Both the position numbers and the translations under genes were made by a program. Below are positions 18,101 through 36,854 of a stretch of DNA of 64,000 bases, piece by piece. This stretch comes from Epithemia pelagica. Taxonomy: Eukaryota; Protista; Bacillariophyta. The stretch is taken from contig OX337239.1 in assembly GCA_946965045.2 (NCBI GenBank), positions 2,604,001 through 2,668,000 of the forward strand, written 5' to 3'. Within the stretch, counting starts at the first letter, position 1. Every line of letters begins with the position of its first letter. The notes beneath the pieces were generated by a model. That model made no database searches. It was not told where the DNA came from and worked only from the letters and a program-made list of their open reading frames with translations.

Positions 18101-18269
18101 CACCATCGCAACGCACAAATCCTCTTGCGGACCCAGGACGGCCCACCCTCGACACTATGATGGACGCCTTCCACCACAACAAGACATTCGAGCTTACTTT
18201 ACCTTCCTACGACACTCTACTTCCAATTCAATCACCAACACAACAGGGGACAATAATCACCCGTCCTAA
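12101..18269 (+). CDS. LINE ORF2: AP endonuclease, reverse transcriptase, RNase H, CCHC finger (start uncertain)
   Basis: APE: YFQNING, GLAETN, LDANE, LDYIF, SDHR. RT: DNDAKSCYD, GQGS, GFVDD. RH: CDGG, RAE, HTDS, HVPGH, NVQAD. Finger: CPNCPCDETQTHLYTC. No stops in frame from 11472 to 18269. Confidence 0.93.
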
Positions 18270-18425
18270 CTCACCGTCCAATGTCATCCGCTCCCTTGTC
18301 CCTTGTTCAGTCCAATTCCTCAACATTCTAATCCCCTAAACCCGTCGCTCAGGCCGCGGTAGACGATTCCCCCTTATGTATGCCATAAGATTCGGATAGT
18401 CTTAAAAAATAGAAGTTACTCATAT

Positions 18426-18444
18426 ATACAATGGACGTCGGTTG
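18426..18444 (+). repeat. LINE target-site duplication, right copy (19 bp)
   Basis: Identical to 9334-9352. Confidence 0.93.
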
Positions 18445-18790
18445 GACCAAGTACCAACAAACTACATTGAGTTTTTGGTTCGAGAACAAGTTTGGAAAGA
18501 GCGTCCCCGACTGTGGCATGCCTTGGCTCGGGCGGGGCAAAAATGTAGCCGCACCACCGCCCCTGAGCTCCTTTCGTCGCCATGTTTGCCAGAGTGAAAG
18601 TGCTGGTTCGTCGTCGTCGTCGTCGTCGACAACGGTGAATTTTGTCTTGGATTTTGGAAAATATTCGGGTCAAGAGTGGAATGTAGTCCCACGTTCTTAT
18701 CGGAATTGGATTATTCGAGACAAGGTATGGGAAAAGCGCCCCAATCTTTCAAGAGCACTCCGGAATGCCGGATACCACTTGGAGACGTGA
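18426..18790 (+). pseudogene. SNF2 pseudogene, 3' part, with two FGKY-type repeats
   Basis: Removing the LINE restores LDFGKYNGRRLDQVPTNYIEFLVREQVWKERPRLWHALARAG. A second copy, LDFGKYSGQEWNVVPRSYRNWIIRDKVWEKRPNLSRALRNAG, follows in another frame. Confidence 0.8.
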
Positions 18791-19629
18791 CACTTTTTGG
18801 TTCAAGAAGAAGATGATGAAGCAACGCTTGGTTCCTAGTTTTTTATGTGCAATCGAGGCACAGTGAGGCGTAGCGGTGCTGTAGGCTGCTCAAGTGATGG
18901 CCAATCCTACCAGACGCAGGCTCGTTGAGAGGCCGGGAGCCCTGTGACAAACGCTGAATAGGCTGGATGCATTGCAACCCTCTTTATCGATGCCAGAGGT
19001 ATATGAGCCTTAGTAGGTAGTTGCTGTTAATTAGGCACCTTGAAGATTCTCCTCGTGACATTTCCACTTTGCACCATGGTCTGCCTAAAAACTAAATCGT
19101 GTTATTGTGCGCTTGTTGACTCGGATTGTATCAGTGATATTTTATTCCTCTCTCTTTGAGATGGCCGAGAATGTATATGCATCATTCAAAGAGTAGTACT
19201 TGTGGCTGCGCCAATGTCGTACAGAGGCACGACACTACGTGAGTAGGATTTTCTCTCTCTGGTAGGTAGGAGTAGTAGACAGTGTTGTTGTTGTTGTTAT
19301 CGTCAGGTGACGGGATCGGAAATCATGTCCACCTGTTGCAAGGGCCAACTCTCGGTTTCGCTGTGACCTAAAGCTGGGCGCACTTGCGGTACAGGCCAAG
19401 AGAACCTTGTTCCTTGTTTGGCATCTCCACGATTTCCCTAGCCCAGCATCACATGTGATTCGAGGACAACAAGAACCCAACAAGTTGAACTGTCGATGAG
19501 ATGGTTCCAAAGCGGCTAGGTTTTCGATGAAGTTTCCGATCTAGTTCCCCAAACCATTCATTCCTTGTTCTTATTCATCCTTTGGGTGCAACAGGAAATA
19601 AACTCACCGAGAGATAGTGCGAGCAACCA

Positions 19630-21732: not shown

Positions 21733-21936
21733 TGCGGTACCCGGACTCTGTCCCGCCACGACTCCACGTAAACATGACTCGATAGGTCCCTAGTTGAATC
21801 TTTGACACCGACGTTCGCAGAATTCAGTCCGTCCTTGTCCCGTGTGCAGATGGCTTCTCTGGCCATCGCTCACTTTCCTAGCCTAATTCCTAAAGATCAT
21901 AATTTTTACGTCCTACCATTATGCATGGGTATGGCA
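21733..21936 (+). repeat. Gypsy 5' LTR
   Basis: TGCGGTACC...TATGGCA; 203/204 identical to 27227-27430. Confidence 0.95.
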
Positions 21937-22073
21937 CTCTGATCAGATTCCTCAACGCCCTTGTTTTTCCTTCTTCACCATAACACAGCTCCGGCGGCCG
22001 ACGTTTGTGCAATTCCTTTTGCCCGTCCTTTGATTCCTTTCCTTTCATTTTCTCACCATTGCATCTCTCCATC

Positions 22074-25000
22074 ATGGCAGACAACACCAATGGGTTCATT
22101 ACCCTTGTCGATGCACTCTGCTTCCAACGTCGTGTTGATGAGGCTCTGTCCTCCGATTCCTTTTCCGCTCTCAAGCTCAAAGATGACGACAACAAGTATT
22201 ACGCCAACCTCCTCCCATTTCGGGAGTCGACGGATGAAGATCCTCGAGATCTCTTTCTTTGGGTCCTCCACTTCGTGGACAAGATCCGCATCTCCGGTCA
22301 TCCGGATCCCTTCGCCGCTTGTTGCGAGTATTTCCCTCGCTCGGTCACCAGCGCTATCGCCGATCCCTTTCTCGAAGCCTACAACGGTTTGCCTCCAGGC
22401 ACCAATCTCGATGAAGCCTGCTTTCAAGGTTTGATTGCTGCGGTCTTCGCTCCCCTTGTCCTTGTCAGTGAAGTTAGTGCTTTCCGCACCTTCCTTCTTT
22501 CTGGGCCCCGGAAGCCCTCAGACATGACAGTGGATTCGCATTTGCAATCCCTTCGCAAGTTCTCTAATGGTCTCAAGTACCTCAGCTCTGACGCTGCAAT
22601 CGTCCCCCTCACCGAAGACGAAATCAAACAAGCCTTTTACCAAGGTTGCCGACTACATGGCGCACGGAATTTCAACAAGCCAATCCCTTGGTGCCGGACA
22701 TTGTCAATCATTTTGACACGGCTGCTCTCTTGCAAGCCATGCGCGGATACCAGCGCGCCTCCAAGCAAAAGGCCCTACAACGTGAGCAACAGCAAAATCG
22801 TTCGCAGTCTCGTCAAGACCACTCTCGTCCTCGCGACTCCAACAACAGCGGCAATCGCGATCGTCGCGTGCGCTCTCGCCAATCTCGTGGTGGACTCCGC
22901 GGTGGCAATCGTGATTCCTCACGTGGCGGAAATCGCCGTGGCTCCTCCGACCGCAACGACTCCTCCGGAGACAATCGTGGCGCCTCCGATGGCAACTCCG
23001 ATCCCTGTCCGTATCGGACCACGATGGACTCCCATCGCAACCATTCTTGGGCTGATTGCATTTATAATCCTACGGGTCGCAATTTCAATCAAAGTCTTTT
23101 TGACGTCATGGTTCAACGTTCTAACCGTTCTACCGGTGGCGGCAACGCCGGAAACAATCCTCCTCAAGGTGGTGGTTCCAATGGCAATAACAACCCGCGT
23201 GGTGACTCTTCCGCTCCTCTGCGTTCCACTTGGGGCTCTCGTCCTTCTGCCCCAGGTCGTGGCAGTGATCAACACGCCTCTGACTCTGCTGGTGCCGGCA
23301 ATGGATGGAATGCCGTTCCTGCCAATCCTCCTGCCGTAGCTCCTCCTCCAGGATGCGTTCCTACCATTCCTGTCGATGCTGAGGGAATCCAGCAGTGGAG
23401 CGATCTTCGCAATCCTGAAAAGACGGTCCCCGGTACGTCTCACCTTTCATCTTCCTTTTCCTCGTCTCCTGACGATCAGACTCATCACCTGGACATTTTG
23501 TTCTCGCAGCAATGTCAGATCCAAACTGGCCCGCCAACAGCTATGCCGGCAGCGCAATCCATCCCAATGCACCCATCAACGAGGTCATCGACCAGCTCAA
23601 TAAAATCTATGGGCGCGGAATGGACATTTCCCACATCTACGACCTGTCCACCCAAGGAGGTCTCGCTGCTTACGCCCGCGTCTCTATGTCGTGATGACGC
23701 TTTTATAAGCGAGGTGATTGATCCTAATAACGGTTACTTGGATAACCTAGAGTCTTATGATGAGTTCTACTCCCAATTTCCTTCATCTAGTGATGTTCAT
23801 TCGTTAGATTCGCCTTCTCGGCCTGAATGCGTCCCACTCACCATCGTCATGGCTCGCCATATTGGCGGTGTTGAGAATACGCTTCCCTTGCGTGCCCTGC
23901 TCGATTCAGGCGCTGACAAGACGATTCTTCATTCACGCTGCCTTCAACCAGGCATGATACCGCGGTCTACCGACCGTTCCGTGAACACGACCATGGGAAC
24001 TCGTTCCGGTGTGTCCGAAATTCTCCTGGAAGACATTGTTCTCCCAGAGTTCTCACGAACCAAACACGTAACCTATCCCTTATGGGTCGACATCTATGAT
24101 GCTCCCAACAGTCGCTATGATATCATCATCGGTCGCGATTTGCTTCGCCGTCTGGGCGTCCTTCTTGATTTCGATCGTGGGATCTCCTCGTGGGACTCCA
24201 TTGAAGTCGCCATGCGCGACCGCGATTCATTCGCGACTGAACACGAGTTCGTCTCACATTTCATCGATCTCTTCGCAGATGATGACGTCCTCGGTGACGA
24301 TTACCTGCTTGATTCAAATTACAAACAGGCAGATCTCGATGAGCTTCTTGCTCAACAGACTCATCTGACGCCCTCACAACAACAAGATCTTCTTGGTGTG
24401 TGGCTGAAATGCGGGCGCATCTTTGATGGCGTCCTGCGTGCCTATCCGGACAAAGAGTTGCATCTCGATCTCATGCCCGATGCCAAACCGGCTCATCATC
24501 GTCATTTTGCGGTCCCTCGCAATATCCATGACACCTTTAAAAAGGAATTGTTTCGGTTTGTCGATATCAGCATTCTCGAACGAGTTGGTTCCACTGAATG
24601 GGCCGCTCCTCATTTCGCCATTCCTAAAAAGGATGGACGACTCCGAATGATCTCGGACTTTCGTTCGCTTAATGCGCAAATGTATCGCCTTGTCTATCCC
24701 TTTCCAAGGATCGAAGATATCCTTCGACGACGCAAAGGCTACAAGTATTTCACAAAACTTGACATCTCTATGTGTTTTCACACTTTCAAACTCGACGAGT
24801 TTTCCAGCAATCTTTGCGTTATCACCACGCCTTTCGGCAAGTTTCGCTATCGTCGTCTCCCTATGGGAGTTAAGCAATCCCCAGACTTCTGTCAGGAGCT
24901 CATGGAAGAAGTCCTCGCTGACTTTCGCGATCACGTCGAAGTCTACATCGACGATATCGGCGTCTTTTCCGACAGTTGGGAAGAACATGTCGAGATTCTC

Positions 25001-27139
25001 AACAAAGTCCTCCAACGTCTTCAAGACAAGAACTTTTCTATCACTCCTCACAAATGTGAATGGGCCATGCAGGAAACCGACTTCCTTGGCCATTGGCTCA
25101 CGCCTACAGGTCTACGACCATGGAAGAAAAAGATTTCCGCGATTCTGGCTTTATCGCCTCCTCGCACCATGAAAGAACTACGTTCCTTCATTGGCATGGT
25201 TAATTTCTATCGTCACATGTATCCTCAGCGATCCCATCACTTAGCTCCGCTAACAGCCTTGACCGGCAAGAAGACCTTTGAATGGTCCCCGCAATGTCAG
25301 AAAGCCTTTGAAAACGTAAAAGCCATGCTTGCGCATGATGCGTTCATCCGCTATCCCGATCACAACATTCCTTTCCACGTCTATGTGGACACGTCTGACT
25401 ATCAGCTCGGCGCTGTTATCATGCAGGAAAACATCCCTGTCGCGTATTTCTCACGCAAGCTCAACCCCGCTCAGCGGAATTACACCACTATGGAAAAGGA
25501 GTTACTTTCCATTGTCGAAACCCTCAAGGAGTTCCGCTCCATGTTGCTTGGCTGTGCCGCCTTGCACATTCAAACCGATCACAAAAATCTCACCTATTCC
25601 ACTCTCAACTCCCAACGAGTCCTTCGTTGGCGTCTCTTTCTCGAAGAATACAATCCCATCTTTCATTACATTCCTGGCCAGGATAACGTCATCGCCGACG
25701 CGTTGTCACGTCTCCCTCTTTCAGAAGAGGAGGAGAAGAGTGTCCCTTCCAAGGTCCCTTCCGATGGTCCCTCGTCTGGACCACGATCCCTTTTCGATCA
25801 TAGCGGCAAACACTCCGTGTTTCAGGTTCCTCGTGCGCCTAATGATGACCCCCGCTTAGCGTCTCGTGACGCGGATTCTCATGAATCCCCTATTTTCATG
25901 GACGAAGAGTTGATCGATGTGTATCTTAATCATCCCGCCATTACGGCCAACCAACCCCTACCGGTTGATTATGCTACGATATTTCAGCATCAACAAAACG
26001 ATGCCGCCTTAATGGCGTTGGTCCAATCCAAACCTGACTATTATCATTTGCAACCCTTTCCTACGGAAAACCCACAATACAACCTTGTCTGTTATCGACA
26101 ATCGGTTAATGCCCTCTGGCGCATTCGCATTCCTGACTCGCTTCTCTTGCATACAGTCAACTGGTATCATCTCGTGCTTAACCACGCTGGTTCCACGCGA
26201 CTCCGCGATACTATCGCCATGCACATGACACATCCCCAATTGGGACTCTACTGCGATCAAGCTGTTTCCAGCTGTCCGACCTGTCAACGGTTGAAGGTCG
26301 TTCATCGACATTACGGAGAATTGCCTCCTCGTGAGGTCCGTGGTAATCCCTGGTCCGACATTGCCATCGATCTCGTCGGCCCCTGGACAGTCAAAGTCCA
26401 TGGCATAGCCCTGACCTTTCAGGCTCTGACGGTCATTGACACTGTCACCAATTTTTGCGAGATTATCCGCATATACGATAAAACCGCTCGACACGTTGGT
26501 CTCCAACTCGAGAATTCATGGCTTTCACGCTATCCTCGCCCTGTTCGTTGCCTTTTCGATCAAGGCGGCGAGTTCATCGGCCATGCGTTTACGCAAGTGC
26601 TTCGTAATCATGGCGTCAAGCCAGTGCCCCTAACGGTCAAATATCCACAATCCAATGCCCTATGTGAACGTCTTCATCTGACGATTGGCAATTCGTTACG
26701 CGCTATCGTTAACTACGAGCCGCCGCAAAACATTGATCAGGCCGCTCTCATGGTCAACACTGCTCTGCAAACCGCTGCATACTCTGCACGCACTGCCATT
26801 CACGGTAGCCTCAAACATTCTCCTGGCAGTCTTGCGTTCCACCGCGACATGCTGTTCGATATTCCCATCCTTGCGGACATGGAATTGATTCGTCAAAAAC
26901 GACAAATCATCGTTGACGAACGAGCTCGACTCGCAAATCGCTCTCGCGTCTTTCATGACTACAAAATTGGAGATCGCGTGCTCATCCGCGCTACCAATCC
27001 GGACAAATTGGCACTTCGTACCAGTCCCAATCCTTTCACTATCACACGTGTCCATTCCAATGGCACTGTGACCATTCAACGTGGTCCCCACGTTACCGAG
27101 CGCATCAATATCAGGCGTCTCATCCCTTACCGTGTGTGA
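22074..27139 (+). CDS. Gypsy gag-pol with one apparent 1-bp deletion in gag near 22646
   Basis: Gag QAFYQG|xPTTW; PR ALLDSGA; RT YIDDI; RH VDTSD, EKELL, TDHKNL, ADALSR; IN H..H..C..C, DLVGP, DQGGEF, ALCERLH. No chromodomain visible. Confidence 0.92.
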
Positions 27140-27226
27140 CATGGGTTTTACTGCCGTTGGCCTCTGGCCATCAAGCTTTCCCATGGCCCGCTCGAACTTC
27201 CTAGGTCCGACCAGGGAGAGGTAGAG

Positions 27227-27430
27227 TGCGGTACCCAGACTCTGTCCCGCCACGACTCCACGTAAACATGACTCGATAGGTCCCTAGTTGAATCTTTGAC
27301 ACCGACGTTCGCAGAATTCAGTCCGTCCTTGTCCCGTGTGCAGATGGCTTCTCTGGCCATCGCTCACTTTCCTAGCCTAATTCCTAAAGATCATAATTTT
27401 TACGTCCTACCATTATGCATGGGTATGGCA
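27227..27430 (+). repeat. Gypsy 3' LTR
   Basis: Preceded by the PPT and followed by TSD GTAC (27431-27434). Confidence 0.95.
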
Positions 27431-27500
27431 GTACCAATACTCGTACTCGTACTCGTACCCAGTGTCCGAATGCTCCATGGACATTGAATTGCTCCTTTTA

Positions 27501-27551
27501 CAAGCTGGTTTCACGAGGGACCTGCCTAGTCTATTACAGTACAAATACTGT
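27501..27551 (+). repeat. Left TIR (flanked by TA at 27499-27500)
   Basis: Ungapped alignment to the reverse complement of 36399-36449 gives 41/51 matches: perfect blocks of 12, 12 and 8 bp and a diverged 12-bp middle. Confidence 0.85.
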
Positions 27552-27713
27552 ACTGACAATTTTGTACATAAAACCATCATAGTAATCATTTATGCCCCGC
27601 TGCTTCTCGACCATGAGGACGGCAAATTTGGATGCTCATAGGAAAACGATGCCGTTCATGGCTGTGAACGTAAGAGCTAATGTTACTAATCGTTCTAATA
27701 GGTCTTATGTGAA

Positions 27714-28214
27714 CTACATTGCAAAGAAGAGATCTTGATTTGCGAATTTGGCCGTCATGGAGCCAAGTGTAGCATTGAGGTCATTCATGTCCTCAAGTTG
27801 CATGTAGACCGTCAGCACCATTGGGTCCATGCAGACCTGCGTATCAATGCTGCACCGCGTATAGAACCGAATGCGACCCTTGACTTTCTTCTCATGCGTA
27901 GGTGACGCCACTGCTTGCATCTCAGACTTCATGATGAAGCCAATCGGAAGCACAAGCAGCGGGTCAACATGCTCCGAATGGGCTTCTCGTTTGAAAAAGG
28001 CAAGCCGGAGATAATCTGTCTCTACTTCACGCTGTAAGAGGATGTGTCCTCGATCCACAACATTCCGTCCGTGACGTCCAAGGTTGTCGGTCATCGGGGC
28101 CATGAGCACGTTGACGTTCTTGGCGTAGAAACTCGTCCGAAATTTGACGCCAGCACCCCCACCATCAACAATGCCTTCTCTCTCCGCGTTGAAATAAAAG
28201 TCTAATCCATCCAT
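27714..28214 (-). CDS. Orphan cargo ORF-A (166 aa), function unknown
   Basis: Clean ATG-TAG ORF of normal complexity, divergent from ORF-B, inside the TIRs. Confidence 0.55.
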   Translation of the reverse strand: MDGLDFYFNAEREGIVDGGGAGVKFRTSFYAKNVNVLMAPMTDNLGRHGRNVVDRGHILLQREVETDYLRLAFFKREAHSEHVDPLLVLPIGFIMKSEMQAVASPTHEKKVKGRIRFYTRCSIDTQVCMDPMVLTVYMQLEDMNDLNATLGSMTAKFANQDLFFAM

Positions 28215-28522
28215 TGTTAGCCGTGGTTGCTGCTTCCTTATTCCTTAGGCGTCGTTTATTATGAAAGCGACGTTGGATTGTTGCGTGTTGAATTCGAATC
28301 GTTGGTTTTGTGTTTCGTTTGCGGATGGCTCCGAAATGTGGCGGCCCCCCGGGTTGGTCGGAGCACTTGCGCGCACCTCCACCATGGTGATCTAAGTAGA
28401 TTGCAGGATTTTGGTCCTTATTCCGAGCATGCACACACTTTTGCTATTGTGGGCTTGCGTGTATTCTGCTTGTGGGACTCGGCTCAGGATGGTGCATGGT
28501 GCCCACGCTCACAAAATCAGAG

Positions 28523-29382
28523 ATGAGCACCAACACCAACACCAAGCTCCGTCGTTCAAATCGGCTTGCCTCCTCAGAGGGCGGCATTGTCTCGGCCATG
28601 GCGAGTACCCCGCCGACGAGGAACAATAAGACTCCCAGCAAGAAACCCAGTGCCAAACGCAACAAGAAGAGCCAGGACGGCTCGCCCGGATCTGTGGTCG
28701 GCAAACGCAAGGAGAAGCTTGTCGTGCTTGCTCCAGTTAAGGGAGCCGACAAGCAGGAGCGCTACAAGGCTGCCCTGCAAGGAGCCACGCAGTGGCAGCT
28801 CACCCTTGCTGACGGCAATGGAGCGACAACGCTCACAATCTGCCGCACAAAAGGTGAAGGTGAAATCACCTTTGGTGGTATAATTGAAACGTTGCAGAAG
28901 ATTGGCACTGATGACGAACTAGAAGATTCAGATGTCAAGAAGACCAGTTTTGGTAAGTGGACACTGCAGCCGATTGTTGCCCTACAATATAAATTGACAA
29001 CTAACTACGCTCCTATTTTCAAGTTCCGAAGACTCCTTCGAAGGTGCAGTTCGTCGGGGTGATGGAAAAGGAGGAACAAGAAGAAGTGATGGCTGAACCG
29101 GTCGTGTCCTCAATGACACCAGGTCAGCAGTATGCGGCGAATCGCGTCATGTCCGAACACCAGGTTAGGTTTCACACAGGCGGAACGCCATTCAAGGCGA
29201 CGAAGAACCGTCCTGCCGAGAACCAGCTGTCGACACCCGAGCTTTTGTTCCGCCACCGCCAGAAGCTCTTCTGCGACCAAGCTACGGTGGATCCCCTCTC
29301 TGCGCAACAAGACTCTCAAGTGGACGACGGGTTTGAAGATACCCAGGATTGTCCGTTCTCTGAGGATTACTACAATTACTAG
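28523..29382 (+). CDS. Spliced cargo ORF-B (~262 aa; exons 28523-28952 and 29024-29382), basic N-terminus and acidic C-terminus
   Basis: A 71-bp intron (GTAAGT donor 28953, CTAAC branch ~29001, TTTCAAG acceptor 29023) joins ORF 28472..29062 to 29044..29382 in frame. N-terminal LRRSNRLAS. Confidence 0.65.
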
Positions 29383-29416
29383 ATAGTCAACTAAGAATCT
29401 TTATCTACGTAGAAAG

Positions 29417-30367
29417 TTATTCATTATCTGAATCTTCATCGTCACGGTCTTCATCATCATCATCATCTTTACCATGTAGATTGTAACATAAAAACAATTC
29501 TTTACCACAAGGGATATCGTGGATCGCAGTCACCTTGAGCTTCCCATCGATGTGGATGTTGTATTTTTTATCGTCCGCGTCAACCTCTTCGTCGGTGTTG
29601 TACTTGAGGAAGTGGGGGTCGTTGGAGAAGTGGAGACCCATCCACAGCTCCTGTTTTGTTGCTTCGATGTGAAAGGGCGTTTTAGATCGGGTGAGGATGG
29701 CGAATTGAGATGGCTCTTTTTGGAGCCCCTCAATCACACTCCCACAATAGTACCCCAAGCTTTCGCCCGCCTCGTAGTTGCGAGCGGCGAAAGCTCCGAG
29801 ACCAGCGTTCGGCAGCGTCGATTTCTTTATCGTAATGAGATCCTTGTCGAGGTACCGGGTGGTCACCTCAAAGTGCTGCTCATCATCGTTCATATCGACC
29901 ATGAAGGTGCCGAAGATTGTTACGTTGTCCTTCTTTTTAGCGTTGATGCGAGGAGCTCGGTTCTTGGTGGTGTTCTTCTGAACCTGTTTGATTGTTGTAG
30001 TCACGGGCTTGCCCTTCGTGCCGTGTTCCTTTCGCACGAGGGCACCACGCAAACTAACAACTCCCTTGATGTGCTCCGCAACGAAATGTTGCATCTTTGC
30101 ACGGTCGGTGAGACTTCCAGATCCCACCAACTGGTCCAGCTTTTTCATCAACCTCGTCGTGCCGACGGGTTTCGGCTTGGGCAGCGTCTTCTGCTTCTTC
30201 TCCGTCGCCCTGATGCGACGAAGAAGGTTGCGCTTGTCTTGCTTGTAGTTTCGATTGGGCTGTAGCTCAATCGACTTGGCAAGCCGACGGAGCTGTGCAT
30301 CGCTCTGATGCTTCTTCGACTTTGACGCCGTTGTTTTTGCAGTCGCACGTGCTGGCGGCTTTCCCAT
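29417..30367 (-). CDS. SET-domain protein (putative lysine methyltransferase), transposon cargo
   Basis: 316 aa; IKKSTLPNAGLGAFA (GxG motif), MGLHFSNDP (NH-like motif), ELFLCYN (ELxxDY-like motif); K/R-rich N-terminal half; D/E tail. Confidence 0.8.
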   Translation of the reverse strand: MGKPPARATAKTTASKSKKHQSDAQLRRLAKSIELQPNRNYKQDKRNLLRRIRATEKKQKTLPKPKPVGTTRLMKKLDQLVGSGSLTDRAKMQHFVAEHIKGVVSLRGALVRKEHGTKGKPVTTTIKQVQKNTTKNRAPRINAKKKDNVTIFGTFMVDMNDDEQHFEVTTRYLDKDLITIKKSTLPNAGLGAFAARNYEAGESLGYYCGSVIEGLQKEPSQFAILTRSKTPFHIEATKQELWMGLHFSNDPHFLKYNTDEEVDADDKKYNIHIDGKLKVTAIHDIPCGKELFLCYNLHGKDDDDDEDRDDEDSDNE

Positions 30368-30374
30368 GGTCAGC

Positions 30375-30458
30375 GAATCGCAAATCCAAGATCTTTTTCA
30401 GAACAAAAAGGGATGAAGAATCGCAAACCCAAAATCTTTTTCAGAACAAAAAGGGATG
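30375..30458. repeat. Tandem 41-bp direct repeat just upstream of the SET gene start
   Basis: 30375-30415 versus 30418-30458, 39/41 identical; each contains the CTTTTT/AAAAAG dyad. Confidence 0.9.
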
Positions 30459-30579
30459 GAAGCAGCGCACTCCCCATTATGCTGCCACATGTCCCACTCT
30501 TGTGAATTGTATCGGAAACAATGTGGCAGCGACTCAGGTTGTGGATGGAATTTCTCCTTCGACAAACACAGTGGTAGCT

Positions 30580-31400
30580 AGAATGACTATGTACTCTATT
30601 GTAGCAGTTAAAAAAGGGAAACAAAGTGCAATCACATCATCATCGTCTCGGCATTTGACACAAAGGTTGTGCAAACGCCTACAAGTATCTCTTTGGTCGT
30701 TCTCACTCGCTCGCGCGCTCTCTCTCTCTCTTGAGTCGTCGTCCGTGCAACAACAACAGCAGCAACAAACGGTTCAACACTTGGAACAAGCCTTGCATCA
30801 ATTCTTGGCCGAAGCCGTCACCTTGTATCGTTATTTGGTCAATCATTTGCAAGCCAAATTGCTCGGACAGTCGGCCACCTTTTCGCAGTCGCAAGTATCC
30901 TCCTTGGCTTCGTCGTCGCAAACCCTGTCACAATCGCAAGACGACGACGACGAGGAGCATCCACCCAGCAACGACCAACCAGAAGAATTGACGCCACTCT
31001 CTCCTTGGCCGTCGTCTCCCAAGTGAATACGACTACAAGTACCAACGCCAACACGACAAACAGCGCTACGACCAAGGGCCACCCCACGGCCAATCCTACG
31101 GCCACGCAACATTCGTCGGCCAGTGCCTTGCATTGGTATGCCCGAGCGCTCTTGGCTCCATCAACATACTGCCACAGTGACGGCAACAACAACAACGACA
31201 TGGAGTCAACGAAGCGCTCATTCTTCCAACAGCAACAATCACAAACAACAAGTCATGACGACTCGCTTATTCTTGGCCGAGTTTGTCGATTTGCATCGAT
31301 TGTTTTTTGTTTGCCAAGGAATCCACGACGCTCTACAAAACCATGGAACGTGTGCGATGCCCTCTTGTGCAAACTCATTTGCATCCAAGCCTTTTTCGGA
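30580..31400 (+). pseudogene. Frameshifted host-gene fragment, possibly EST1/SMG5-7-like
   Basis: Fragments FLAEAVTLYRYLVNHLQAKL, ALHWYARALLAP and RLFLAEFVDLHRLFF lie in different frames with host-type polyQ/T runs. Family call is from memory of motifs only; boundaries approximate. Confidence 0.35.
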
Positions 31401-31976
31401 ACATATCGTGAGTTCCACCAATGCAACGAGCAGCAGTCAAACCACCACAAACATCTGCAGCCACCAAAGAACACCCTTGGGAACTCGGGACGATTTGACA
31501 TTTCTTTGCCACTCGGTGACACGGCGATTGATTTTGAGGCCATTGATGGCAGCAATGGACGAGATTCAAACGACGAGACGACAATGACCACAAAACCAAC
31601 AACAACAACAAGAAGAAGACCTAAAAGACCACCCCGAACCGCCACAACAGGTTCACAGTCAACCACTCGAAGAGGAGGAGGAAGAAGAGAATGATGAAGC
31701 ACTGCCATTGGACGAACACACAAAACCACCAATAAGTACCCGCCGACCACAACTACAAACACCCATTCGTCTCGCACCTTGTCGTGATGCTCTTACGGGC
31801 GATCCACAATAGCGCTTCACATCCACGTGAGAAGAAGAATGTGTCCTCCTTGATGTGAATCCCGACCAGGATCATAACAGTAGTACGCATGTGAACTTAG
31901 TAACCTACCTAGTTGATTCAACACTAAATGAGCACTACTAGTATGTAATATGTATCTTTGAGACATGCAAATTGTT

Positions 31977-34639
31977 TCAGGGTTCAGCTTGTTGCGCCTC
32001 TTTCCAAGCCTGCTGGATGTAGGTATGCTCTTGATCAAGGGTGCAACGATGCGTCTTCATCGTCTGATTAACGTACTTCTCGATCTCCTCGTAGGAAAGA
32101 CCATTGCTTTCAAAATCTGCGTCAGCTCCATGTCGATCAAACAAGAAGTACACCAACATGTAGCGCCGTGCTTTTGCTGAAAACTTTCGCATTGTTTTCA
32201 ACGAAACTTTGGCAACACTCTTTCGTACACATTGCACAAACTTGTCCTTGTTCGATTTTTCAGCCTTGGTCATGCTCCGAAAGACTCGCTTTGCAAGTCC
32301 CCACCCATACTCAATGCCTTCACCCGCAAGTTCACAATGGTACTTTGTTGTTGTGTGGACATCAATCCTGCGATCAAACCGTGCCGAAAGATCTTTTGCA
32401 AGTTGTTCAAGCGCTGACAGCTCGTGCTTGAAGTCATCGCAACATCCCATCAGGTACAGAAGCGAATACTTTTGATACTCCTCCATGCAATCATCTTTGA
32501 GTTCCCCTGTCGCATCCATCCATGCCTTGCGCTTGTCTCTAACGTACTTGTCTAGGTTTGCTGGGTCAATAAACCCACGCTCCCAAAGAACTTGGAAGAG
32601 ACCCTTGGGTTGCCCAAGCCACCCTTGCGCCACTACATCTTGTTGGACTTGCGTTGGCAATTGCTTTGCTTGCGACATAACTTGGAGTTGCGCAGTGGAC
32701 TTGGACTGGTATGTATTCAGATGATCGCCACCAGTCCCTTGCTCAAGGTCGTGACGAAGCATTTGAGCAACTAGTTCTTTCTTGGAAAGCTTGCGAATTT
32801 TCTTCTCTCCTGTTGCACAATCAAACTTCATACTCTCTCGCTGCGCATCGGTGAGAGGAGTATTCTTGTATGCGTATGGTCCACTGTCCTCGTCTGTGTA
32901 GACCATACGTTGCTTCGCACCTGGCTCGAGACGATCAGCGTGTGCAAAGGGCCCAACATGCGGAACAACAGTCTCATGCATATGCGGAGCAACGCCACCC
33001 CATTCAAAATTCATGTTTTTCTCGTTCAGACCATCTTTCTGTTTCCTTGCATGTCCACTGCTATGATCAAACAAGAACGCGAAGTCAAAGTCGGGGAAGA
33101 TGTTCACCAAACAATCAACCAGGTCTTCAAATTGGACTGCCATGTGATCGTAGGTCCAGTAACCATCACCGTTGGAACCTACATCAAAGTACGTACAGAA
33201 TGGGCTTGCATCAGTGATTTGTCGAATTCGCTTGTCGTCACCACCGATCACTTTGATTGCCGACTCCGTAGACAAATACTTGTCACGCCCAAGCACACTG
33301 TCCCTCCGTAGACAATTGATCCTTTGTATCATATCGCGGCTGAGTAGATTGGTCTCCTTCTCCACACAGAAACTCCATGCCCGACTAACAAATGCACTTA
33401 GCATCAAACTATGACCCTCGTCTTTTGGCAGAAGGGTTCCAGATCCTTTGTGGTCATGCCAAGACTTCTTGGAGAATGACCATTGTTTGAAGACTGCCTC
33501 ATCTTGGCCGACAATTATGACAGGGCGACGGTTGGGAGGGAAACGATGTGACAGATTTGCTCCGAAAGGCTTGTTTTCCTCTTTCACATACTTTGCGAAG
33601 CCTTCTGGGAAACAGTCAATGTGGTATTCTCGCATTGGCTTGTTGGTCACTGGGTCCACAAACTCAAAGGCCCAAACATTTTTCATCAGTTTCTCGCTGG
33701 AAGAATCACATCCGTCACCATTCTCTAGTTTGACTGCTTCCTCGATGGGGATTTGAATCCATCGGTGTGCAAGCTTTTCAATCTTGAAGTAGTCTTCGAT
33801 GAACTGCTTTCTGTGTGCCACGTTGTCTGGGTCCTCGTGCCGATCGGTGTAGTACGACTTCTTTGTGTCTGAAAACTTGAGGCCTGCATATGCAAGAAAT
33901 CTTGCTGCTGTTGAAACTGCCACTGTTCTCAGCTTCAGTTGGCTCTTGAATTCCGTCAGAGTTGGCAGGTCCTCTGAATCCTCAGTTGCGTGGTCGGCTA
34001 GCTCCATGTTATAGATCTTAGGAACAAGCTCATCTCGAATGAAGGTGGCCGCCATTTCACAGGACATCCGTTCAAGGTTCTTGCTTGCCCAACATTGAAA
34101 GATGCGCTGTGCTTCTGGGAATGCTTCAAATAGTAAGGGGCATGGCATTCTTCCTCTCTGAACGTATGGATTGGGGTGAGGGAAGCGTTCATTGTTTCGG
34201 AACTGGATGTTCCAGACTTGGATTGTTCGCCAGTGAGTAGCAACTATTTTTGTCTCCGGTCCATGCATACGATGAAATTCACTCATTGCAGCTTGGCAAC
34301 AATTACTCCAGTAGTTGCCTTTCTCCATTGTTGCCAGAGCCATCTGATACGTGATCCGGAGTAGCGTTGCTCTTGCCATTATCTTTGGCACGAAGCTTTT
34401 CGCAGGTTCATATTCATCTGCCTTGTTCACCAAAGACAAGAGATTGCTGTAGTTGTATTCAGCATCCATAAGACGCTTGACCCACCGTTCAAGCTTCTGT
34501 CTTGTCATTTCATCATTTCTCCCTGGTGGACCAGCAAAAATTTTCTTGACATAGGTCTGGTCGAAGAAATCGGTGGTGGATCTTGGACTTCTTGCTGGTG
34601 CTACCACATTTTGGTGTGCCTGGACTGGCAGTGTTGTTG

Positions 34640-34671
<32 letters not shown>

Positions 34672-35138
34672 GGTGGTGGTGGTGGTGGTGATACAGCAAT
34701 CATGGCTGTTTCTTCGTCTCTTATCGGAGTTGCAGGATTCTTGCGTTTCTTCCTTTGTGTAATGCGGACTGTCAACGTTTTTGCGAAGGACAGCCACTCA
34801 TCAGGTGAATAATCAAATTTTGGAGGTGGCTCATTCCCGCACGACAAAACATAGTAGAAATGTTTTGTTTGGTTTCTTTGCTCTTTCTCATTTAGGTTTC
34901 GATGCAGCGTGTATCGATAGACGCCTCTACTATTCCGATTCATTGATGAGAAATGGAGGGTCCATTCAGGACTGCGCGTCAGAGCTCGGTTCATCTGTTG
35001 GGCGTTTGACAAATCGGGAACCCATTGTTTCAAGAAGGGAACAAGCTGTTCATCAACAATCCACCGATTTGTCCATGGGAAGATCTCTGGACAGCATTGA
35101 TCTTCAAATGCCTCACGAATTTTGCGCGAGAGACTCAT
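31977..35138 (-). CDS. Large DDE transposase, Tc1/mariner-IS630 superfamily (~1053 aa, D-144-D-251-E)
   Basis: Motifs IIVGQDE, LMLSAF, GYW, FLFDHSSGH, KYHCELAGEGIEYGWGLAKRVFR. Intact ORF; likely start MSLSRK at 35138 (ORF track starts at 35207). Confidence 0.85.
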
Positions 35139-35154
35139 AGTTGACGGAGTCTCG

Positions 35155-36120
35155 CTCACACAGCCGGGGAGACAGACAAGGCAGTGGACGAGACGACAGT
35201 CTCTCACACAGCCGGGGAGACAAACGAGGCAGCGGACGAGGCGACCACAGAACAGTGCACGACGTGAAGCACTGCTATTTCTAGAGATAAAGGAACTGCG
35301 TAGGTGATGTTTTTTATAGTTGATTGCTGGCTGCTATTCGGAGTCTCGGGGAGACAGACAAGGTTGCGGGGAGACAGACAAGGCAGAAGACGAGGCGAAA
35401 GTTTCTCGCCTTTGGAGTTGTTCTTGTTGTTGTTGTTGTTGTTGTGATTTGTGGCACTGGTGGTAGCCGAGGGGTTGGTAGTACAATACTCTTGTTGTTG
35501 TTGTTGTTGTTGTTGTTGTTTTCCGTCGATGGTGACACAGCCGGGGAGACGAACGAGGCAGCGGCCGAGGCGAAAGTTTCTCGCCTTTGGAGTTGTTCTT
35601 GTTGTTGTTGTTGTGATTCGTGGCACTGGTAGTAGCCGAGGGGTTGTTAGTACTCTTGTTGTTGTTGTTGTTGTTGTTGTTGTTTTGCGGCGATGGTGAC
35701 CCAGCTGGGGAGACAAACGAGGCAGCGGCCGAGGCGAAAGTTTCTCGCCTTTGGAGTTGTTCTTGTTGTTGTTGTTGTTGTTGTGATTCGTGGCACTGGT
35801 GGTAGCCGAGGGGCTGTTAGTGCTCTTGTTGTTCTTATTCTTGTTGTTGTTGTTGTTGTTGTTTTCCGACGATGGTGACACAGCCGGGGAGACGAACGAG
35901 GCAGCGAACGAGGCGAAAGTTTCTCGCCTTTGGAGTTGTTGTTGTTGTTGTTGTGATTCGTGGCACTGGTGGTGGCCGAGAGGTTGCTGGTACTCTTGTT
36001 CTTGTTCGTATTGTTGTTGTTGTTGTTGTTTTGCGACGATGGTGGTTGTGATCCTCACACAGCCGGGGAGACAAACGAGGCAGCGGACGAGGCGAAAGTT
36101 TCTCGACTTTGGAGTTGTTG
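35155..36120. repeat. Composite tandem array (~165-180 bp units) with embedded (GTT)n tracts
   Basis: Core CAGCCGGGGAGAC.AACGAGGCAGCGG.CGAGGCGAAAGTTTCTCG at ~35161, 35209 (both partial), 35365, 35538, 35702, 35881 and 36060. Confidence 0.92.
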
Positions 36121-36398
36121 TCGTGAAGCGCTGCGATTTCTCGAGATACAGGCGCCGCGTACGTGATGTTTTTTGATAATCTGTTTATGACATACCTATG
36201 CTATCGATCTGTCGCATTACATCACGTACCAGCGGCATGTGACGGCTATGGTGACCTGAAGCGGTGGCAGTTGTTTTCGTTTTCGAATACCATCACGAAA
36301 TTATGTGAGGAACCGGAAAACTCCACCGCGTCCGCACCGCTAGAGTACTATGAGATAATTTGTACTGCCAAAAAAGGGAGTATTGGCAAGATTTGTAC

Positions 36399-36449
36399 AC
36401 AATTTTTGTACTTTAATAGACTAGGTATGGGGCGCGCGAAACCAGCTTG
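36399..36449 (-). repeat. Right TIR (followed by TA at 36450-36451)
   Basis: Reverse complement of the left TIR; ends GAAACCAGCTTG|TA. Confidence 0.85.
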
Positions 36450-36854
36450 TATGCCCAGATCCATGGACCAGCCCTAAGGAAAAATTCACAATTGCCTGAA
36501 ATCCGAATGGGTAGTCATCGATGGCTTTTCCCCTAATACGAGTACTCGTATGGTCATTCTGAGCATAGCATATCTGGTTGGGAAGGATGCGTCTCCATTA
36601 TTTGACCAACGCTCAACGCGATATTATTTTGGGATCGACACAACCATTGAAACACCGACCATCCAAGACAGCCAGCGGCCCGATCCGATCTCGTGGACAG
36701 TTTCTTCGTACCCTCTCATTTTCATTTTGTCGTGGGGACCGATTGTTTGTTCAGTGACTTGCTCAACTACTCTCTCGTGTTTGCAAGGATTCCTTGTTTG
36801 TTTTCATTTTTTTTTTTGAGGAAAGGCAGCAGCAACGTACAATCATTATCAATC

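Follow-up and report, generated by a model that had tools for sequence, protein, structure and literature searches.

A multigene DNA transposon family with a putative Tc1/mariner-type transposase and a conserved SET-domain gene in the diatom Epithemia pelagica

Tc1/mariner elements are the textbook example of minimal transposons, with one gene in 1–3 kb. The VANDAL elements of Arabidopsis encode VANC anti-silencing proteins, which target tandem repeats of the elements themselves, and primate SETMAR (Metnase) is a host fusion gene that was born from an insertion of Hsmar1 beside a SET gene. The spacing between the D and E residues of the catalytic triad is 34–41 in Tc1/mariner transposases and 78–111 in those of the Sailor group, which are 323–676 amino acids long (PMC8533490). 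SET genes have also been reported within the HarbingerS and MuDR transposons of Phytophthora (Kojima and Jurka 2014, as cited in PMC12730594), and DNA transposons of fungi encode TET/JBP dioxygenases (PMC12730594). Here we describe an element of 8,953 bp with a TA at both sides, located at positions 27499–36451 of a 64,000-nucleotide stretch of the genome of the diatom Epithemia pelagica (contig OX337239.1). This whole stretch is hereafter called the window, and coordinates refer to it unless another locus is named. With a probability of roughly 80%, we take the element to be an apparently intact, autonomous copy of a family of multigene cut-and-paste DNA transposons, in which a very large transposase is accompanied by a SET-domain gene and 2 further genes, ORF-A and ORF-B (ORF, open reading frame).

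Exact ends and dispersed copies

The 2 ends of the element form the longest inverted repeat that a repeat finder detects in the region, i.e. a pair of imperfect terminal inverted repeats (TIRs) of 53 nt that are 81% complementary (27499–27551 and 36399–36451). At the ORF-A end, a TA at 27499–27500, which we presume to be the target-site duplication, is followed by CAAGCTGGTTTC, and the transposase end closes with GAAACCAGCTTG before the TA at 36450–36451. The terminal 12-mer occurs twice in the 64 kb, inverted and once per end, compared with 0.36 occurrences expected by chance. Inverted repeats with a TA at 27499 and 36451 had been proposed from a sequence-only reading of the window, and they lie exactly at these positions. 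The contents listed by that reading were also all located, namely ORF-A, an ORF-B whose splicing is predicted, a SET gene, an intact ORF of 1,053 amino acids and a repeat array. All 4 reading frames are open in the window copy, and Rfam and tRNA scans found no RNA genes in the element.

Paralogs of the transposase-like protein are encoded on further contigs of the same ENA assembly, and 4 paralogous loci from this assembly were compared with the window element. The copies are assigned to subfamilies A (window and L001), B (L002), C (L003), and D (L010/L011). Searches with the element and 300-bp flanks (blastn) show that homology with L001 spans the window from 36451 to 27499, with none outside, and the L001 element also has a TA at each side; this copy is degenerate, with stops in the transposase and in ORF-A. 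The L002 element is 11.5 kb long with perfect TIRs of 30 nt reading TACAAGCTGGTTCGAG, and the L003 element is ~7 kb long with TIRs of 58 nt reading TACAAGCTGGTTCACG. The L010 and L011 elements (9.76 kb) are 98.5% identical from TA-CAAGCTGAG to CTCAGCTTG-TA, and their flanks are unrelated. A subfamily D left end with a downstream SET ORF is also present at L007, with neither ORF-A nor a right end within that locus.

The consensus ends of the family read TA-CAAGCTG...CAGCTTG-TA. Specifically, an alignment of termini reveals that TA-CAAGCTG(G) is kept across subfamilies for insertions that sit in unrelated flanks, and that within each element the 2 ends differ internally in a conserved manner. 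A TA borders 6 complete insertions (window, L001, L002, L003, L010, and L011), as well as 2 more left junctions found in reads, and no direct repeat longer than TA surrounds any of the 6. We also mapped contigs assembled from public DNA runs of the organism onto 27300–33299. These contigs depart from the window exactly before 27499 into 2 other flanks, and depth is approximately threefold over the first 200 bp of the element. Because these boundaries are common to independent copies in different flanks, the unit is a genuine TIR transposon—i.e. a mobile, multicopy element with exact common ends.

A predicted transposase of unusual size

The transposase gene is located on the minus strand (ORF 31977–35207), where the first ATG at 35138 gives an intact coding sequence of 31977–35138 and a protein of 1,053 amino acids. 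Its family comprises 70 homologs, mostly of ~1,000 amino acids and all labeled hypothetical, from Fragilaria crotonensis, Nitzschia inconspicua, a pelagophyte and many environmental contigs. Near-invariant motifs in the alignment of this family (A1) include GQDE (D569, E570), DxSxGH (D714, H719), and HxELAGEGIEYxW (E959, E963, E966, W969), and many conserved residues are found between the last 2 of these, e.g. PKGLxQVLWERG at 867–878. The residues D714 and E966 have a spacing of 251, and the insertion between them is conserved in all 36 aligned homologs. Given that IEYxW is analogous to the PIExxW motif of Tc1, we read D569/D714/E966 as the putative catalytic triad (D546/D691/E943 when counted from the ATG rather than by ORF), i.e. 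a DD251E enzyme with an insertion of ~250 amino acids.

We compared an AlphaFold model of the transposase (mean predicted local distance difference test score, pLDDT, of 80) exhaustively with solved structures using VIA-align. The catalytic domain of Metnase/SETMAR matches the model with a Z of 12.7 over 192 of 201 residues (root-mean-square deviation, rmsd, of 3.0 Å), followed by Mos1 (Z 12.7) and Sleeping Beauty (Z 11.2), and retroviral integrases, Tn5, Mu, P element, and Hermes reach a Z of 8.9 at most. All of the 4 best structural matches are from the Tc1/mariner group (190–202 residues, 2.9–4.6 Å), and in the predicted model the alignments with Metnase, Mos1, and Sleeping Beauty cover ~95% of their catalytic domains. 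The nearest structures in the ESM Atlas also belong to DDE_3/IS630 clusters. Full-length Mos1 aligns to model residues 273–1024, including a helical region at 273–440, with an overall rmsd of 14.9.

The model also suggests how the remainder of the protein is organized. A winged-helix-like domain is predicted at the N-terminus (approximately residues 13–150), in addition to the part that aligns with Mos1, and the middle of the protein is a disordered Pro/Thr-rich linker with a conserved KRK motif resembling a nuclear-localization signal. Downstream of the linker, a helical region that resembles a helix-turn-helix (HTH) aligns with the DNA-binding part of Mos1, followed by the DDE RNase-H-like core with its ~250-residue insertion. 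On the basis of these structural comparisons, the large protein is predicted to be a derived transposase of the Tc1/mariner/IS630 type, in agreement with the Tc1/mariner-like enzyme that had been proposed for this locus.

The linker is also the site of a repeat expansion in one copy. In the transposase gene of L001, a 9-bp microsatellite, ACCACAACA, is expanded to 70 units with 96% matches within the Pro/Thr-rich linker (L001 9197–9828).

Three accessory genes that recur with the transposase

Searches with tblastn reveal a constant layout in L001, L002, and L003—i.e. transposase, SET, ORF-B on the opposite strand, ORF-A and TIR—and ORF-A, both ORF-B exons and SET are present in all 3 loci. Relative to the window copy, amino acid identities in L001, L002, and L003 are 87%, 55%, and 55% for the transposase, 82%, 67%, and 58% for ORF-A, 76%, 39%, and 45% for SET, and 56%, ~39%, and 36–48% for ORF-B. 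The sizes and positions of its genes indicate that subfamily D is arranged in the same way; its ORF-A homolog (P0075) is identical on 6 contigs, and an ORF-B profile matches its opposite-strand ORF. A multigene transposon that includes a SET gene, as suggested for the window, is thus a layout that recurs in 4 subfamilies, and copies with the same gene order, TA flanks, and boundaries were sought and found in L001, L002, L003, and L010/L011.

Given the recurrence of these genes, we also computed the ratio of nonsynonymous to synonymous substitution rates (dN/dS), as the sequence-only reading had proposed for the cargo genes. Pairwise values between element lineages are 0.12–0.31 for SET and 0.14–0.23 for ORF-A, with 0.10–0.19 for the transposase (window, L002, and L003 copies), bearing in mind that dS is near or beyond saturation in the deeper pairs and that several SET pairs gave no estimate. 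These values indicate that SET and ORF-A are under purifying selection. With order, orientation, and sequence kept across 4 subfamilies, and with this selection on SET and ORF-A, the 3 accessory genes are best regarded as a core module that evolves with the element, and not as a recent capture from the host or a cassette that the window copy picked up, as had been thought.

The SET-domain protein (29417–30367, minus strand) has 316 amino acids, of which the N-terminal half is basic, residues 189–296 form the SET domain, and the tail is acidic. The Pfam SET model scores 22.5 bits in the window copy, 25.7 in L003, and 29.7 in L010, against a gathering cut-off of 22.4, and EZH2 is the nearest solved SET domain (E 2e-5). 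In the alignment of SET copies (A4), the GLG of NAGLGAFA, which corresponds to the S-adenosylmethionine-binding GxG, is found in 4 of 5 copies, the ORF model of L002 being without that stretch, and MGLHFxNDP and Tyr295 (in ELFLCYN) are invariant in all 5. As such, the gene product is a divergent SET-domain protein with putative methyltransferase activity. Its relatives come only from contigs of the ENA collection of the window assembly, in both single-sequence and profile searches. In subfamily D, the protein is enlarged to 986 amino acids (L010 5439–8399), and SET is the only Pfam match in it at E ≤ 0.01.

ORF-A (27714–28214, minus strand) encodes 166 amino acids and belongs to a small family, with 22 representatives among 1.8 billion proteins. 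Its model (pLDDT 86) is a seven-stranded beta-sandwich capped by a C-terminal helix, which matches the EVH1 domains of Homer and ENAH, Dcp1, and the Ran-binding domains of Nup2, Nup50, and RanBP with Z of 10–10.8, in agreement with Foldseek; the p62-PH domain matches as well as EVH1 and Dcp1 do (Z 10–11). None of the 22 family members has a match in Pfam, including to Ran_BP1, and an ORF-A profile searched against PDB sequences returned a cupin (E 1.1) and nothing relevant. These results lead us to reject ORF-A as a true Ran-binding domain, since the fold is alike but there is no link at the profile level, and EVH1, Dcp1, and p62-PH score equally. We also considered that ORF-A could be an EVH1-like binder of the poly-Pro tract in the transposase, and rejected this because subfamilies B, C, and D carry ORF-A yet have no Pro run. 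The model thus points to a generic PH-like protein-interaction fold, of the EVH1/RanBD class, in a conserved accessory gene.

ORF-B (28523–29382, plus strand) is a predicted 2-exon gene for 262 amino acids (exons 28523–28952 and 29024–29382). Its intron (28953–29023, 71 nt) is bounded by a GTAAGT donor and an AG acceptor, with CTAAC as the branch site, and its removal restores the reading frame; it is retained in the mapped read contigs, which behave like DNA assemblies. The N-terminus of the protein is basic, its core is conserved (AxQWQL..D.NG), and DDGFEDTQD..FS.DYY.Y forms a C-terminal motif; the protein is conserved in L001, L002, L003, and L010/L011. Searches of Pfam gave no match to a family or fold, and feature searches of the ESM Atlas gave nothing usable. 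The cassette had been described as chromatin-type, a description that SET supports by evidence, but that does not extend to ORF-A, with its generic PH-like fold, or to ORF-B, which has no assignment.

A protein of 1,792 amino acids (P0089) from a library of representative proteins has 5 stretches that match the PH-like family of ORF-A and may be a tandem-repeat relative. Three short metagenome contigs from the Joint Genome Institute (L008, L009, and L013) each carry an ORF-A homolog with a divergently oriented upstream ORF, and the one in L013 is Lys-rich like the N-terminus of ORF-B, with no detectable homology to ORF-B. This arrangement suggests that an ORF-B/ORF-A gene pair may exist beyond the genome of E. 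pelagica.

Other parts of the element are variable. A tandem array (35367–36121; 179 bp × 4.3, 83% matches) lies between the TIR and the start of the transposase. A blastn search found related repeat sequence at the equivalent place in L001, and L002 has an unrelated array there, with ~29 units of 71–80 bp. In L003 and L010, the TIR and the beginning of the transposase are just ~300–380 bp apart, too close for an array of this kind to fit in between. Arrays that are unrelated between subfamilies A and B, and for which C and D have no room, argue against a conserved VANC-like target, the role that had been considered for this repeat. The array is more probably a lineage-specific and labile expansion of the promoter or 5′ region than a core part of the element. 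Similarly, the 1.6-kb spacer between the 3′ end of the transposase and the start of SET (30368–31976), formerly taken for a host fragment, is low-complexity, variable sequence. It is patchily shared with the spacer of L001, with a central ~830 bp unique to the window copy, and homology searches matched nothing besides L001. One read contig omits 30770–31590 of the spacer, although this is weak evidence.

Additional repeats are found next to the elements or with their relatives. The left flank of the window element adjoins a Ty3/gypsy-type long terminal repeat (LTR) retrotransposon (21733–27430), which stops 68 bp before the DNA transposon. Its LTRs (21733–21936 and 27227–27430; 204 bp) are 99.5% identical, and it carries an uninterrupted gag-pol ORF of 1,497 amino acids with RVP, RVT_1, RNase H, and integrase. 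In L002, a 616-bp unit resembling a miniature inverted-repeat transposable element (18252–18867), with inverted repeats of 64 nt and 97% identity, abuts the right TA of the element, and the ends of this unit bear no relation to the CAAGCTGG termini. In N. inconspicua (JAGRRH010000014.1), a 13.4-kb segment with a transposase homolog is present twice, ~55 kb apart (L004/L005), with 99.4% identity between copies. This segment has 2.7-kb sub-repeats at its borders, and TIRs of the type found in the window family were not observed.

Alternative readings and described transposons

We propose that the transposase would use its N-terminal winged-helix and HTH regions to bind the TIRs, enter the nucleus by means of the KRK motif in its linker, excise the element and reinsert it at TA. 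The SET protein would methylate lysine on histones, or on a protein of the element or the host, and ORF-A and ORF-B could serve as interaction or targeting partners. Together, they would tune the chromatin state of the element or its transposition competence to the benefit of the element, and the direction of such an epigenetic effect could be anti-silencing, self-restraint, or target choice. It is in this sense that we infer an epigenetic function for the module, which would share its purpose, though not its ancestry, with other epigenetic modifiers that transposons carry. In its SET gene, the element may have a chromatin tool of its own.

Several observations weigh against an autonomous, mariner-type, multigene element. 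The transposase has no match in Pfam even at E ≤ 10 (nor does that of L010 at E ≤ 0.01), and a profile built from 36 homologs has no match among PDB sequences, so that assignment to a superfamily depends on predicted structure. The D-to-E spacing of 251 residues is far beyond the 34–41 of Tc1/mariner and the 78–111 of Sailor (PMC8533490). In SET, the position of the canonical NH(S)C motif reads HFSN in all copies, and SET catalysis is therefore not assured. Flank searches among the window and the compared loci found no empty site, so it is from the flanks that a duplication of TA upon insertion can be deduced. Neither accessory genes nor recognizable TIRs were found around the transposase homologs of Nitzschia and Fragilaria. 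Lastly, both expression and the splicing of ORF-B are predicted.

These points give some room to other explanations, of which the best placed is that the transposon is real but belongs to a separate, undescribed DDE superfamily, its likeness to Mos1 and Sleeping Beauty being that of a generic RNase-H-like fold and the terminal TA being part of the element. The lack of sequence matches in Pfam and PDB agrees with this, as do the weak whole-model Foldseek matches, which are restricted to Mos1, SETMAR, and POGK (E 0.15), and hAT, P, Transib, and piggyBac, rather than Tc1/mariner, are the elements that typically have a long stretch inserted after the second Asp, ahead of the Glu. However, the 4 top structural matches are all from the Tc1/mariner group and clearly above integrases, Tn5, Mu, P, and Hermes, the Atlas neighbors are DDE_3/IS630, and the DE..., D..S.GH, and IEYxW motifs resemble Tc1 signatures. 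The 6 insertions also lack any direct repeat beyond TA. We thus consider a separate superfamily unlikely.

Slightly less probable still is that SET, ORF-B, and ORF-A are captured host genes that travel as passengers with no role in the life cycle of the element, being kept by a benefit to the host or by hitch-hiking. Transposons do capture host genes, and the accessory genes are not found beside the Fragilaria and Nitzschia homologs. Against this, the 3 genes keep a constant order and orientation across 4 subfamilies whose transposases are 39–55% identical, they diverge in step with the transposase, comparisons of element lineages give SET and ORF-A a dN/dS well below 1, and profile searches place the relatives of SET only in the ENA collection of the window assembly. 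A third alternative, in which ordinary host genes happen to be clustered between inverted repeats that arose by chance, could cite the imperfect TIRs (81%), but is refuted for practical purposes by several copies with identical ends in unrelated flanks and by a terminus conserved across subfamilies.

The mobile multigene element that we favor can be extended to a broader, tentative proposal, which we regard as possible but on balance doubtful. In this proposal, the transposases form an undescribed branch of IS630/Tc1/mariner at the level of a superfamily (DD~251E with a new insertion domain), present in diatoms and other ochrophytes. In at least 1 genome, this branch would have co-evolved with a fixed module of SET, PH-like, and basic proteins, and the element would use this module to place a methyl mark on histones or other proteins and so regulate its own silencing or mobility. 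If true, a mariner-type transposon would encode a system for its own epigenetic control. The predicted structures and conserved layout also suggest that a lineage with the Tc1/mariner catalytic fold has acquired a threefold larger enzyme with a conserved extra domain, and that 3 accessory genes were retained through deep diversification. This would broaden the range of structures known for mariner-type transposases, a group with wide use as genetic tools, and provide a tractable case for the function of transposon-borne SET proteins. In addition, ~70 hypothetical proteins of ~1,000 amino acids in diatom genomes and marine environmental data are flagged as probable transposases.

Compared with described systems, the family resembles IS630/Tc1/mariner, including Sailor (DD82E), in its TIRs, TA flanks, predicted RNase-H-like DDE core and Tc1-like motifs around D, D, and E. 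By contrast, its transposase has ~1,050 amino acids, compared with 323–676 in Sailor (PMC8533490), and its elements are 7–11.5 kb long with 4 conserved genes instead of 1. The resemblance to SETMAR lies in the association of SET with a mariner-type transposase, Metnase being the best structural match to the catalytic core, but in the present family SET has a gene of its own within a mobile element. With VANDAL/VANC, the family shares the concept of a transposon-encoded factor that controls its own chromatin. However, no VANC-like protein was detected, as Pfam searches of the element proteins matched SET only, and the tandem arrays, being unrelated from one subfamily to another or missing altogether, would probably not serve as a conserved target.

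The fungal TET/JBP transposons, too, are cut-and-paste elements of large size in which an enzyme that can alter an epigenetic mark is stably maintained, but they differ in enzyme class, transposase lineages, and host kingdom. The closest parallel in content is with HarbingerS and MuDR of Phytophthora, which, as described in the citing article, are likewise stramenopile DNA transposons that encode their own SET-domain protein of the lysine-methyltransferase type. By that description, their transposases are of the PIF/Harbinger or MuDR type, whereas the family reported here has 2 further conserved genes beside SET. As such, the organization, of which the sequence-only reading knew no description, is not without precedent, given that SET genes are reported in those elements (PMC12730594), and a SET gene within a stramenopile DNA transposon is, on that account, already known in concept. 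As far as we have checked, what appears to be new is the predicted mariner-type fold with a 251-residue insertion in an enzyme of ~1,050 amino acids, the fixed 4-gene organization, and the PH-like and ORF-B partner genes.

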